From positions 35,377,626-35,441,625 of the forward strand of contig CM074516.1 in the NCBI GenBank assembly GCA_037379345.1: a stretch of 64,000 nt of DNA. The letters are read 5' to 3'. Of this stretch, positions 19,421 to 24,562 are shown in pieces. The notes under the pieces were generated by a model. It had not been told where the DNA came from, did no database searches, and saw nothing but the letters and a program-made list of their open reading frames with translations. The translations under genes and the position numbers were made by a program. The DNA comes from Perna viridis. Lineage: Eukaryota. Positions within the stretch are counted from its first letter, which is position 1. Each line of letters opens with the position of its first letter.

Positions 19421-19907
19421 CCCCCCTTTTCCCCAATACACACACCTTATTTTTCTCATTCTAGTCATGAATTAACTATTTGTAGAAATGTTTTTGAGGA
19501 GCGTATATAAACAGTGACGGGTGACGGGTATTTATTTATTTATATTTCGTTTATTTTTTTCTATTTTGTTTGTGTTAATTGACAAAAAGGGATGGAATTT
19601 ATTCTTGTATCTATATGTTTTATATCTATATAGAAGTGGAAGTGCTTATTTTCAACAATATTCTCTCTTTATGTAACTGATTTGTGCTATTAAATTAACG
19701 GAGGTATTAATCTCAGATCTACAAATGGTAGCCCTAAAAAGTTTTACATGTATACACATGTGAAAGTGAGGCTCAACAAGATGGACGTTTGTTTTTTTCT
19801 CGGTGAAAATTTATAGTGTAAACATGGATTTATTATAACATCTAGACTTTTATTGTGATAAAAGAAAATATCAGAAGAATTGAAAGGTATATTTGCACCG
19901 ATTATTT

Positions 19908-20747
19908 ATGCCGAGACACAAAAATCAGCCCAATCAAAGGCCTAGGTACAGTACATCAGATTCAGATAGTGATTATTATCGGCCTACACCAAAACGAATG
20001 AACACTAAATCTTACTCATATTCCTGTCCTAAGCCTATTAATTTAACAATGTCGACAACATCCGATACAACATCTACCCAGTCGGATCAAACTGTTTCCA
20101 CTGCTGACCTTTATAAACTAATGTTGACAGTAAAACAAAATCAAGATTCCCTGAGAACGTCACTCGAACAGAGAATTTCAAATTTAGAGACAAAATTTAC
20201 AAACGAAATAAAGATGAGCATGAAAACACTAAAAGATGAAATGACTTTAGAATTTGCTCAAGTTGACAACAAAATAAAGGAACTGGAAACTAAAATGTCA
20301 AATTATGAAAGTAAACAACAAGAAATAAACAATGATCTACCGTCTGTTAGTATGAAAAATGTTCAGCCAAAACTTGTATTTAGAAACATTAAATCTGAAG
20401 GATTAAATACTGATAGCCTGGAGACGTATGTTAACGGAATACTAAGATCAATTGGATTAGAGTTTAGTGTAGTTAGCGCTCAGCAGATCGGTAATCCGAA
20501 TAACGGAAGAGTAAACAATACACAACGTCCGAAACCAGTTCTTGTTACTTTCGGAGATGAAAATCAACGTGTTGATGTCCTTAAGAACAAACGAAAACTA
20601 AAAGACATAAATGATTACAAAAATATCTACATAGAAACAGATCGTACACGACAAGAACGCATCAACGACGCTAATTTGAGACAGATAATCAAATCAATTC
20701 CAGAACTTCAATTTCGAGGCGGGCGTGTAACCGTGAAGCAAAATTAA
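19908..20747 (+). CDS. LINE ORF1p (coiled coil plus RRM-like domain)
   Basis: Heptad-rich centre; RPKPVLVTF...VLKNKRKLK...IYIETDRTRQER. First ATG at 19908. Confidence 0.9.
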   Translation: MPRHKNQPNQRPRYSTSDSDSDYYRPTPKRMNTKSYSYSCPKPINLTMSTTSDTTSTQSDQTVSTADLYKLMLTVKQNQDSLRTSLEQRISNLETKFTNEIKMSMKTLKDEMTLEFAQVDNKIKELETKMSNYESKQQEINNDLPSVSMKNVQPKLVFRNIKSEGLNTDSLETYVNGILRSIGLEFSVVSAQQIGNPNNGRVNNTQRPKPVLVTFGDENQRVDVLKNKRKLKDINDYKNIYIETDRTRQERINDANLRQIIKSIPELQFRGGRVTVKQN

Positions 20748-23700
20748 CAGTTAAGCCAGTCAAATAGTAACGATGCCGAATTAAGACTGGCTTGTTGGAA
20801 TTGTAATGGTTGGTATGTGACACGACAAAACGATGATAGTAGGGAATTACGAGAAAGTATTTTAACTGCATTAAACTACGATATAGTTGGACTTTGCGAA
20901 AGTCACTTGAGAAATGATCAGACTATTAATTTGGAAGGTTATCATTGTATTGGAAACAATGGAAAACAAATTTCGAACAACGCATGGCGTGGTAGTGGAG
21001 GTATTGGTTTTTTAATTAAAAACTCGCTATATGACAGTTTTGAAGTAAACATTCTAGACGATAGTAGAGATGACATTTTATGGATTTATTTAAAAAACAA
21101 AGATGACCCAGAGCTAACTTTATATTTATGCGTGTGTTATCTACAACCCGAGCGATCGAGTAGAGGTAAAATTGCTCAAGAATTCTATGACTGTCTTTTA
21201 TCTCAGATGTATCTTTATAGTACAGGTTGTCCGATTTTCATTTGCGGTGATTTCAATGAACGAGTTGGAAATCTCCAAGATTTTAATGATTCATTAGACT
21301 ATTTGCCAAAACGTATTCCTATTGACGAAACAAGAAACGCATTTGGTGACTATTTGCTAGACTTCTTGAAGGACTCTAACTGCTGTATGCTAAACGGACG
21401 TGGTGATTACTCGAAAGACAATTTTACGTTTGTTTCACCCATCGGGAAATCAGTAGTTGACTATATGATTGTCCCATATACAGTACTTCCGAATGTTTGT
21501 AACTTTGAAGTAAAACTGATTTCGTCTCTGATAATTGAAAATGGTGTTCAACTTTCGACGAATACACGATTACCGGATCACTCTATACTTACCTGTTCAT
21601 TTAGAATCTCAGAATATGATCAACTCAACAAGAACATATTAGATACAACCGAAAACGTCACTGATACTACGAATATAAAATATCAATCAACACGTAAATA
21701 TAATGTTTCAAAGACTTATTTACCAGTGAACGATGCATGCGATGTCTCGAAAATGTTATCGACTCTTTACTCGATATCCGCAATATTGACGATAGAATTA
21801 ACACTATATACGAATCATTCATTGAAGCTATTCATCATGAAATGGACAACAAGGTTGACTACAAAGACTATACACCAAGTTCGAACAACGTAAACGACGA
21901 AATGCTAAACCATACTGGAACAATGATTTACGAGACTTATTGATAGAAACAAAGCTGAGAAAAAATACCTACAATTTAAAAGAGACAGACGGATTAAAAA
22001 TGAACTGAAAAACACGTTTAAAATAAAGAGAAGACAATTTGATAAACGTCTACGACAAGAAGAACGTAAATATGTGGCTCAAAGACTTGATAATATTAAA
22101 ACGTTTAACCAGAAGAACCCGAAAGAATTTTGGCGGGAAGTAAACAAACTTGGACCCGGGAAAGATACAAAAACAATTAATAGCGTGATAATGGGTGACG
22201 GTAGTGTTTCTCATAACCCAAACGATATTCTGTCTAGATGGAAACAGGAATACGCGAAACTTTTTTCTGGTGATATTCAGAATGTGGACAATGATTTTTT
22301 TGAACAATTAGAACAATTAAACACACAGTTAGAACAAGAATTTGAAAGTTTGAACCATACAAATGAAACGATTGATACTGAACAACAAAGTATAAACGAT
22401 CCTATATCGATTGAAGATGTTAAACGTGCGGTACATGGTTTAAAGAATGGTAAAGCAGTCGGAGTCGACAATGTTCCAAATGAAATTTTGAAAAGTGACA
22501 AACTAACCAACATTCTTCATGAACTATATAATGTTTGTTTTTCACATGGAATAGTACCTGATATGTGGTGCCAAAGTATCATCTGTCCGATTTTAAAGAA
22601 TGGAAAGGACTACCGTGATCCATTAGGATACAGAGGAATTAGTCTTACGTCAACTGTCGCTAAAGTATTTAGTCAAATAATGAATGAAAGACTTGTTAGA
22701 TATCTTGAGAACAATAATCTATTGAGTGAAGAGCAAAACGGATTTAGGTGTCTCAGATCATGTCTGGATCATATTTATTCCTTGTGTACAATTTTGCGTA
22801 ATAGAAAACTAATGAACTGTGATACTTTCTTGTGTTTCGTAGACTTTAGCAAAGCCTTCGACTCGGTCAACCATACTATTTTATGGAATAAACTTTTAAG
22901 TTCAGGTATACATGGAAATATGTTCAATACTATCAGATGTCTTTATTCGAAACTGAAAACTGCTGTCCGCTTGTCTCCCGGGATTCTCACCGATTGGTTC
23001 TCAGTTGATACAGGAGTACGCCAAGGCGATAATCTTGCTCCTACGCTCTTTGCGTTATTCATTGACTGTTTAGTACCACAAATTAACAATTTATCATGCG
23101 GCGTTCAAGTTGGAAAGGATATGATAAGCTGCTTACTTTATGCGGATGATATTGTGTTTATCTCTGATAGTCCATACGGTCTGCAACGCCAACTTGACGT
23201 CTTACATGAGTGGACAAAATTAAACTGTTTACATGTGAATATTGATAAAACAAAGATTATGCATGTTCGTAAAACAACAACTGACAGATGTGATTTCTCG
23301 TTTATGCTTGGTAATACAGCAATTTACTTCGTTGATAGATATCGCTATCTTGGTTTAACAGTCTCTGAAAATATAGACTACAACATATCTGTAAAAGAAC
23401 TCCCAGTTGCGGCTAGCAGGGCACTTGGATCATTAACCTCCAAATATCTTCATATGGGTAACATGGACTATGCTACATTCGCAAAGATATACGATAATAC
23501 TGTCATCCCCGTAATGGACTATGCGTCAGGCGTTTGGGGTTTGAAACGATATGATGTATTAGAAAGACTTCAGTATCGGGCTATTCGTACTTTCTTAGGT
23601 GTTGGGAAAACCTCACCGATTCCAGCAATAACGGGTGATATTGGATGGACTCCAGTACACATAAACAATCAGTGTAACGCAATTAGATTGTGGTGTAGAC

Positions 23701-24332
23701 TTATGAACTTACCGGAATCCAGAATTTGTCGAAAAGTGTTTAGTTGGGATGTTGAGATTTCGGCACGATACAAAAATACATGGTTTAATAGTGTTAAAAC
23801 AATTTTGAACAATAGTGGTCTGGCAAATTTACTTAATCATACAGACAATCAAGACTTGATATCGACAAAGTACATTATTGACTCAGTAAAGACTACACTT
23901 ATAGACAATTTCAAAATCGAGTGGAATACAAAAGTTCAAGACATGCCAAAACTTAGAACATATAAGCTATTTAAGACCGATTTTAGTACTGAAGCGTATG
24001 TGAAAAACTGTTTATCGAGGAAACAGCGATCAGTTATTGCCAGAATACGATGCGGGACACTATCATTAGAAGTGGAACAAGGCCGCTATCGCAATATTCC
24101 GTTAGACCGTAGATTCTGCAAAGTGTGTAACTCTAACCTCATTGAAGACGAAAACCACCTCCTACTTTTGTGCTCTGGTTACGCAATTAGGCGAAATGAA
24201 CTTATACAACAACTGTCTTCCATAAATTTTGACTCTCCTTTAGATGCGCTAAAAAAACTGCTGACGAATAATTCCAAAATTGTTGCAAACTATATCATAG
24301 ACTGTTTAGATATACGACGTGGTGTTATATAA
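20748..24332 (+). pseudogene. LINE ORF2: APE endonuclease, RT and CCHC motif, with frameshifts in the linker (about 21710-21950)
   Basis: LRLACWNCNG, GLCESHL, ICGDFN, SVVDY and PDH (APE); VDFSKAFD, GVRQGD and LLYADD (RT); CKVC...EDENH...C at the C-terminus. Confidence 0.93.
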
Positions 24333-24562
24333 AAACTTGCTTATTCAAACTTATTTCACCTATAACAAATGACGTTAAATTTATAGAACCCTCATTTTCT
24401 ACTTAACTTAATGTGTACATATGACAGTGCTTCGTAAGCCTATCTGGCTGGCTAAAAATATATCTGTAATCTATGTATTTGAACATGAAAAATTCAGGTT
24501 GCACTTTAATAAATTATTTATTCATTCGTTCATATACACATACACATAAAACTACAACTCAA

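Follow-up and report, generated by a model that had tools for sequence, protein, structure and literature searches.

The 64,000 bp stretch of the Perna viridis genome analysed here, hereafter the window (positions 35,377,626 to 35,441,625 of contig CM074516.1, assembly GCA_037379345.1), contains on its forward strand a full-length copy of a long interspersed nuclear element (LINE) which we have designated family A. The element encodes two open reading frames (ORFs), ORF1 and ORF2, the second of which carries an apurinic/apyrimidinic endonuclease (APE) domain followed by a reverse transcriptase (RT) domain (Table 1). ORF1 and ORF2 were found to lie in the same frame, on either side of a single stop codon: the sequence between 20,742 bp and 20,747 bp reads AAT TAA, after which the same frame continues as CAG TTA AGC CAG TCA into the APE and RT encoding region. 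Translation across the junction gave QLSQSNSNDAELRLACWNCNGW. The strand that leads into the W-N-x-N-G-W motif of APE started near codon 11 to 12 past the stop, and the first methionine in this frame was approximately 150 codons in, beyond the first APE motifs. All of this bore out an earlier note on the same DNA, which had described a TAA followed in frame by CAG TTA, an APE beginning about 11 codons past the stop and no in-frame ATG ahead of its first motif, and which had proposed that readthrough of the stop yields an ORF1-ORF2 fusion in the manner of Gag-Pol.

The junction region had 10 matches in the genome at 97–99% identity, one of which lacked the junction itself. The TAA was present in all nine of the junction-covering copies, that of the window included; it was followed by CAGTTA, an exact match to the CARYYA motif named in the note, in eight of them and by CAGTTC in the ninth. 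The same TAA CAGTTA was found in L071, an intact 4.9-kb contig from a public run that matched the window between 19,771 bp and 24,536 bp at 99%, and in which an ORF1 of 279 amino acids is followed by a same-frame ORF2 that is open for 1199 codons. The TAA is not private to the window copy: the note had advised a check for a copy-specific nonsense mutation, and no sense codon was seen at this position in any genomic copy or in L071. The genomic copies of family A are, at 97–99% identity, too alike to inform on constraint.

The same layout was found in diverged relatives. ORF1 and ORF2 shared a frame, interrupted by exactly one stop and with a methionine-free linker, in 29 lineages with APE identities down to approximately 33%, so that the frame conservation on which the note had made its proposal depend was present. 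These lineages were family A, four more families from the same genome, elements of Mytilus edulis and Mytilus galloprovincialis, a contaminant of a metagenome-assembled genome (MAG) and approximately 20 lineages from metagenomes. The P. viridis genome holds at least four more families of the same LINE clade, and a further 20 or so diverged APE matches in it lie outside the lineage count. A long same-frame ORF1 (190–330 amino acids) was present in approximately 19 of the 29. The organisation typical of Gag-Pol, in which two ORFs of one frame are parted by one stop and the first catalytic motif has no initiation codon ahead of it, was thus seen in all 29 lineages, and the in-frame single stop clearly exceeds chance across them.

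Within P. viridis, family B (L056, L059, L060 and L063) was represented by at least seven near-identical copies with an ORF1 of 308 amino acids and an open ORF2 of 1167 amino acids, and looks, from its sequence, to have been recently active. Its junction reads ORF1-TAG-GTA CAC-ORF2, in frame; that of family C (L054) reads TAG-GAA AGA, also in frame. Families E (L037) and F (L065, with an in-frame TAG-G) have only five codons from the stop to the W-N-x-N-G-W motif, which means that decoding of ORF2 must begin within approximately two codons of the stop. In an intact M. edulis element (APE 81% identical) the junction is TAA CAT TTA AGC CAG TCA, and an M. galloprovincialis element with intact ORFs (APE 71% identical) reads TAA TAT TTA AGC CAG TCT. 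L072 (APE 45%) reads TAG GAC AGC, with ORFs of 260 and 1204 amino acids in frame. This complete eukaryotic LINE of the clade is carried by contig JBEVXV010000967.1 of a bacterial MAG labelled Sedimenticola sp. (GCA_040505915.1), and is probably host DNA that was misbinned.

A scan of metagenomes with the APE alignment gave 43 loci. Assessable loci were those that retained the APE N-terminus together with sufficient sequence ahead of it and were not badly decayed; in each of them, tracing the APE frame upstream led first to a single stop, before which a same-frame ORF1 was open. Two further relatives, known from gene coordinates without their DNA, were also in frame. The frame stayed constant while the spacing did not: the C-terminal tails of ORF1 ranged from 4 to approximately 190 residues and were of low complexity, and the linkers ranged from 5 to 127 codons, the longest being that of L121, which was open, in frame and without methionine. 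A maximum-likelihood tree of APE had deep branches (median terminal length 0.37), and the UAA-bearing mytilid group (100/99 support) was nested in it among UAG lineages.

Relatives with a different 5′ organisation were also found. In L074 and L076 there is no ORF1, its place being taken by 5′ tandem repeats (L074: 2700 bp–3100 bp; L076: 1 bp–200 bp), and ORF2 begins at its own methionine 8 codons ahead of the first APE motif. The nearest outgroup found, L109 (APE 28% identical), has the classical layout, with an ORF1 in another frame that ends 25 nucleotides inside ORF2 and an ORF2 that begins at an ATG (L109: 700 bp–1300 bp). From these cases, the missing AUG goes together with an upstream in-frame ORF1.

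The positions around the junction were tabulated for 25 non-redundant lineages. The stop was TAG in 22 of the 25, a G was found at +4 in 21, an A at −2 in 19 and a C at +13 in 16, and purines predominated at +5, +7 and +8. The stops that close ORF2 in these elements were TAA (5), TAG (1) and TGA (1). The first residue past the ORF1 stop is D, E, G, A or V, exactly the amino acids that have G-initial codons; as the residue varies while the G stays, the constraint at +4 falls on the base and not on the residue. In the L085–L093 group, A-P-G-Y before the stop and D-x-x-P-H-G after it (P-H-G being codons 4–6) were kept with synonymous changes, and both sides would thus be read as protein right around the stop. 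On this comparison of junctions, the stop and its surrounding context are constrained at the RNA level.

Type III readthrough signals have UAG plus a 3′ G as the part residing in the primary sequence (Firth & Brierley 2012, PMC3542737). The UAG and the 3′ G or purine-rich octanucleotide that characterise them were present in the clade at the frequencies given above and were absent from the window's own branch, where the mytilid subclade has UAA and the window family a C at +4. The mytilid context is UAA followed by N-A-N-UUA-AGC-CAG-UC. In a three-way comparison of family A and the two Mytilus elements, the 10 codons from the stop had a nucleotide identity of 0.97 between family A and M. edulis vs 0.79 overall, the third-highest window; the other two pairs gave 0.80 vs 0.66 and 0.83 vs 0.65, both among the higher windows. 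Synonymous codons among these 10 were 100% identical, compared to 67% overall. A C-rich patch at approximately +11 to +17 took forms such as GCCAGUC, CCCAGCC and GCCGGUC, and stays beside the stop in L121 despite its 127-codon linker.

RNA structure was examined around the stop. Folding of +1 to +100 in 20 lineages gave no shared structure (z −2.05 to +1.24). The hairpin predicted for family A (Table 1) was considered as a shared signal and rejected; its stem is not kept in the Mytilus relatives, so that its role is doubtful. The C-rich patch (20,754 bp–20,761 bp) could form a pairing of 6–8 bp with the GGN-UGG that encodes part of the N-G-W motif (20,808 bp–20,813 bp), approximately 40–50 nucleotides downstream. 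For 13 of the 26 lineages, this pairing ranked within roughly the best 11% of control windows, a figure that base composition confounds, and we regard it as a possible lead only. In several lineages the variable N and its partner were seen to change together (C:G, A:U, U:G), with one clade as an exception.

The protein encoded by ORF1 was modelled with AlphaFold. The model (mean pLDDT 72.7, a moderate confidence) had a disordered N-terminus, a coiled-coil helix at residues 65–141, a domain resembling an RNA recognition motif (RRM) at residues 155–233 and a small C-terminal domain (CTD). Its top structure matches in PDB by Foldseek were the human LINE-1 ORF1p trimer structures 2YKO, 2YKQ and 2LDY (E 3e-5 to 1e-4), and 2W7A was matched as well. 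In the predicted fold, the ORF1 architecture is therefore like that of L1 ORF1p, with which it shares the coiled coil, the RRM and a small CTD; it differs in that sequence similarity to human ORF1p is undetectable and the mussel CTD is shorter. A Pfam search with seven ORF1 proteins gave weak coiled-coil matches and nothing else, and a PDB sequence search with ORF1 gave no matches. A phmmer search with ORF2 matched in the RT region only, where R2 (4e-33) and L1 ORF2p (approximately 1e-30) were comparable. Since the ORF2 sequence is no nearer to L1 than to R2, the element would not be placed in the L1 clade on these matches. A search of protein clusters for its LINE clade gave generic RT and endonuclease clusters and no clade name.

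Homology between the genomic copies begins at 19,748 bp–19,762 bp of the window. At the 3′-end the element has no poly(A); the homology to L071 ends in AT-rich sequence that contains short repeats of ATTC and ACAT (24,500 bp–24,545 bp). An alignment with L071 showed that the window copy is missing 1 nucleotide near 21,886 bp and 4 nucleotides near 21,946 bp. At least one further indel probably lies upstream of 21,886 bp, because the two deletions that were seen sum to 5 nucleotides, which does not restore the frame, and because the translation diverges from that of its relatives earlier. The window copy is dead: small deletions shift the frame of ORF2 between APE and RT (21,700 bp–22,073 bp) and create stops (Table 1). 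The best explanation of the element is a young bivalve LINE, of which the window holds a full-length yet dead copy.

Table 1. Features of the family A element in the window.
Feature	Position (bp)	Strand	Basis
Full-length LINE copy, family A, approximately 4.79 kb	approximately 19,750–24,536 (ends approximate)	+	Homology between genomic copies; alignment with L071
ORF1, 279 amino acids plus TAA	19,908 (ATG)–20,747	+	Reading frame
Single in-frame TAA between ORF1 and ORF2, candidate recoded codon	20,745–20,747	+	9/9 genomic copies, L071, two Mytilus relatives
CAGTTA, fits CARYYA, family A only	20,748–20,753	+	Absent from Mytilus relatives and UAG-G lineages
Predicted hairpin, 10-bp stem (20,752–20,761 with 20,785–20,794), starting 5 nucleotides past the stop	20,752–20,794	+	z −1.85; 6/200 shuffles as stable
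C-rich motif, family A form AGCCAGTC	20,754–20,761	+	Motif approximately 10–17 nucleotides past the stop in most lineages
APE endonuclease domain of ORF2	20,796–21,512	+	Pfam Exo_endo_phos 2e-8, Exo_endo_phos_2 3e-4; alignment
W-N-C-N-G-W motif of APE	20,796–20,813	+	Codons 17–22 of the frame past the TAA
Three in-frame stops (21,891, 21,906, 21,924) in the frame-shifted stretch of ORF2	21,891–21,926	+	Translation; comparison with L071
RT domain	22,620–23,363	+	Pfam RVT_1 1e-32; PDB sequence matches R2 and L1 ORF2p RT, approximately 1e-30
C-terminal Cys-X2-Cys...His-X4-Cys motif of ORF2	24,117–24,173	+	Translation
ORF2 stop TAA	24,330–24,332	+	

Logan contigs of four runs from four studies, probably of RNA, tiled the element at low depth, with the junction stop unchanged and no joint. 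The intact L071 element also sits on a contig of a probably transcriptomic run, with its stop unchanged. As evidence that the element is transcribed, these contigs are weak.

On balance, these comparisons lead us to think that ORF2 is reached by obligatory readthrough of the ORF1 stop, so that it would be made as an ORF1-ORF2 fusion. Most ribosomes would terminate at the ORF1 stop and yield ORF1p, and a small share would instead accept a near-cognate tRNA at the stop and carry on, giving the fusion in the manner of retroviral Gag-Pol. Through its coiled coil, such a fusion could enter ORF1p trimers assembled on the same RNA. That readthrough occurs, how efficient it is and that it is the fusion which is active are points that we infer; low readthrough could suffice, as LINEs would need very little ORF2p. 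Readthrough is favoured because decoding of ORF2 starts a few codons past the stop, without an AUG, in the frame of ORF1 and with the identity and context of the stop both conserved. That the frame is shared is no trivial matter, because tails of 4 to approximately 190 low-complexity residues should tolerate a frameshift, which under reinitiation would merely relocate the stop to a different frame, and an out-of-frame variant was not seen. A wider proposal, which we hold to be evenly poised, is that ORF2p of this whole clade of APE-bearing LINEs from bivalves and other marine invertebrates, with their L1-ORF1p-like ORF1, is made only as a readthrough fusion at a conserved A-N-UAG-G stop, and that the signal has turned over, the mytilid branch having passed to UAA with another 3′ context and family A to CARYYA.

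Several points weigh against readthrough. Termination is generally favoured by a purine at +4, and readthrough might be basal only. Type III signals normally require a downstream RNA structure, and none that is conserved was found here; folding of −90 to +93 in 28 lineages showed no excess stability (mean z 0.14). We know of no LINE for which an ORF1p-ORF2p fusion has been shown to be functional. Some of the frame conservation could reflect inertia, if the ancestor had a zero-length spacer, and the lineages share ancestry, so that the counts are not independent trials.

An alternative that we consider unlikely, yet the main rival, is termination-reinitiation independent of an AUG, in which ribosomes or 40S subunits restart on the next codons and make a separate ORF2p. 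Human L1 is the precedent; its ORF2 mechanism was, in work by Alisch from 2006, reportedly AUG-independent. The stop of the mussel element directly adjoins ORF2, the G at +4 favours efficient termination, and no structure that would stimulate readthrough was found. Human L1 ORF2 is reported to be translated by unconventional termination/reinitiation and that of SART1 at UAAUG (reviewed in PMC5972666 and PMC3894237). Reinitiation that does use an AUG is proposed for SART1 and for caliciviruses. Reinitiation needs no shared frame, but all 29 lineages have one in spite of their very plastic ORF1 tails, and in the known cases stop and start overlap in different frames, as in the outgroup L109. A start codon that overlaps or adjoins the stop (UAAUG or AUGA type) was found in none of the linkers. 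The first four codons contained no AUG and no conserved near-cognate start, 16 of the 29 lineages having none at all, and motif 1 (UGGGA) of the calicivirus termination upstream ribosomal binding site (TURBS) was absent from −90 to −1 in 25 of the 29, although tethering sequences of another kind may be present.

It is likewise doubtful that CARYYA in family A is a functional signal of the tobamovirus type (type I) that has replaced the ancestral UAG-G. The exact CAG-UUA is kept within the family, as described above, CARYYA stimulates readthrough of UAA too (PMC3542737), and the mytilid subclade changed its stop and context together. Against this, the nearest intact relatives have CAU-UUA (M. 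edulis) and UAU-UUA (M. galloprovincialis), both of which break the CAR rule, and the part that is conserved is UUA-AGC-CAG-UC; elsewhere in the clade the stop is UAG followed by G. CARYYA was present in one of approximately 28 lineages, which at a per-site chance of approximately 1/250 to 1/500 could be coincidence, and the match may be either that or a lineage-specific replacement signal. In the readthrough proposal of the earlier note, then, the shared frame, the single stop and the missing ATG held across the lineages, and CARYYA as a conserved signal did not.

Editing of the UAG by ADAR is a much less probable route. If a fraction of the transcripts had the codon converted to UIG, which is decoded like UGG (Trp), one long ORF would be opened, as at the amber/W site of hepatitis delta virus; U-A-G is the preferred ADAR triplet, and UAG is the prevailing stop in the clade. 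In two decayed copies from different families, L070 (approximately 1393 bp–1395 bp, minus strand) and L068 (approximately 2242 bp–2244 bp), TGG stands at the position of the TAG of their relatives, as would be expected from occasional retrotransposition of edited RNA, but two changes from TAG to TGG are not unlikely through ordinary transition mutation. No conserved duplex was found at the stop (mean z 0.14; the A was paired with a mean probability of 0.40), the UAA of the window subclade would need two edits, and the stop was unchanged in the contigs of the four probably-RNA runs, in which rare variants are dropped. Splicing, with the AG of UAG/G as a 3′ splice site that joins a short AUG-bearing 5′ exon to ORF2, is hardly credible: UAG/G does resemble the YAG/G acceptor consensus, but a donor-like site (at least 8/9 matches) was missing from the 5′ untranslated region and ORF1 in 10 of 15 full-length lineages, the sole phase-0 donor found belonged to a single family and lay 414 nucleotides ahead of its ORF1 ATG, families A, B and C had no pyrimidine tract ahead of the stop, and the contigs of the four runs had no joint at the junction.

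The closest known systems are murine leukaemia virus (MuLV) gag-pol and the type III signals of luteoviruses and tombusviruses, in which a structural or RNA-binding ORF and an enzymatic ORF likewise share one frame, with a single UAG-G between them and no start codon. L095 and L096 read UAG-GGA-GGU at this point, and family B UAG-GUA. The LINE clade differs from these systems in that no pseudoknot or stem-loop was found approximately 8 nucleotides downstream, in that its members are elements without long terminal repeats (non-LTR) that have no protease to split the fusion, and in the UAA of the window family. The six bases past the stop of the window family fit the tobamovirus stop-CAR-YYA exactly; the motif is not kept in its relatives or the clade, and the stop is UAA in place of the usual UAG. 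With human L1 and Bombyx SART1 the mussel element has in common a bicistronic LINE RNA and an ORF2 coupled to the end of ORF1, with an AUG that is perhaps dispensable in L1 (PMC5972666); in contrast to them, the mussel clade has no spacer, AUG or change of frame, and the conserved shared frame is not found in theirs.

A search of full-text literature gave no description of the in-frame layout of this clade, and one passing suggestion of readthrough, for the group 3 LINEs of Paramecium, whose ORF1 and ORF2 share a frame and whose ORF1 stop is, in the authors' suggestion, read through (PMC5405496). By their description, these LINEs resemble the mussel element in having same-frame ORFs; they differ in belonging to ciliates, with deviant stop-codon usage, and to another LINE clade with a zinc-finger ORF1, and the suggestion came with no comparative or context analysis (PMC5405496). 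A 2013 review of LINE protein biogenesis lists reinitiation, internal ribosome entry sites and 2A and does not list readthrough (PMC3894237). For recoding of the Gag-Pol type, here in a LINE clade, the comparative evidence from sequence is strong and readthrough itself is unproven.

How ORF2 is translated from a bicistronic LINE RNA is a long-standing open question, and this clade offers a clean, testable case of it: spacer and AUG are both missing, and a single stop lies in a conserved context. Natural controls are available too, namely the ORF1-less relative with its own AUG and the sub-branch with another stop and context. Gene callers break such LINEs in two at the stop and place the beginning of ORF2 at arbitrary internal codons, and annotation should therefore allow for an in-frame stop. 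If ORF2p is indeed made by readthrough, the fusion would explain simply both cis-preference and the low ratio of ORF2p to ORF1p, and the logic of Gag-Pol would be extended to non-LTR elements.

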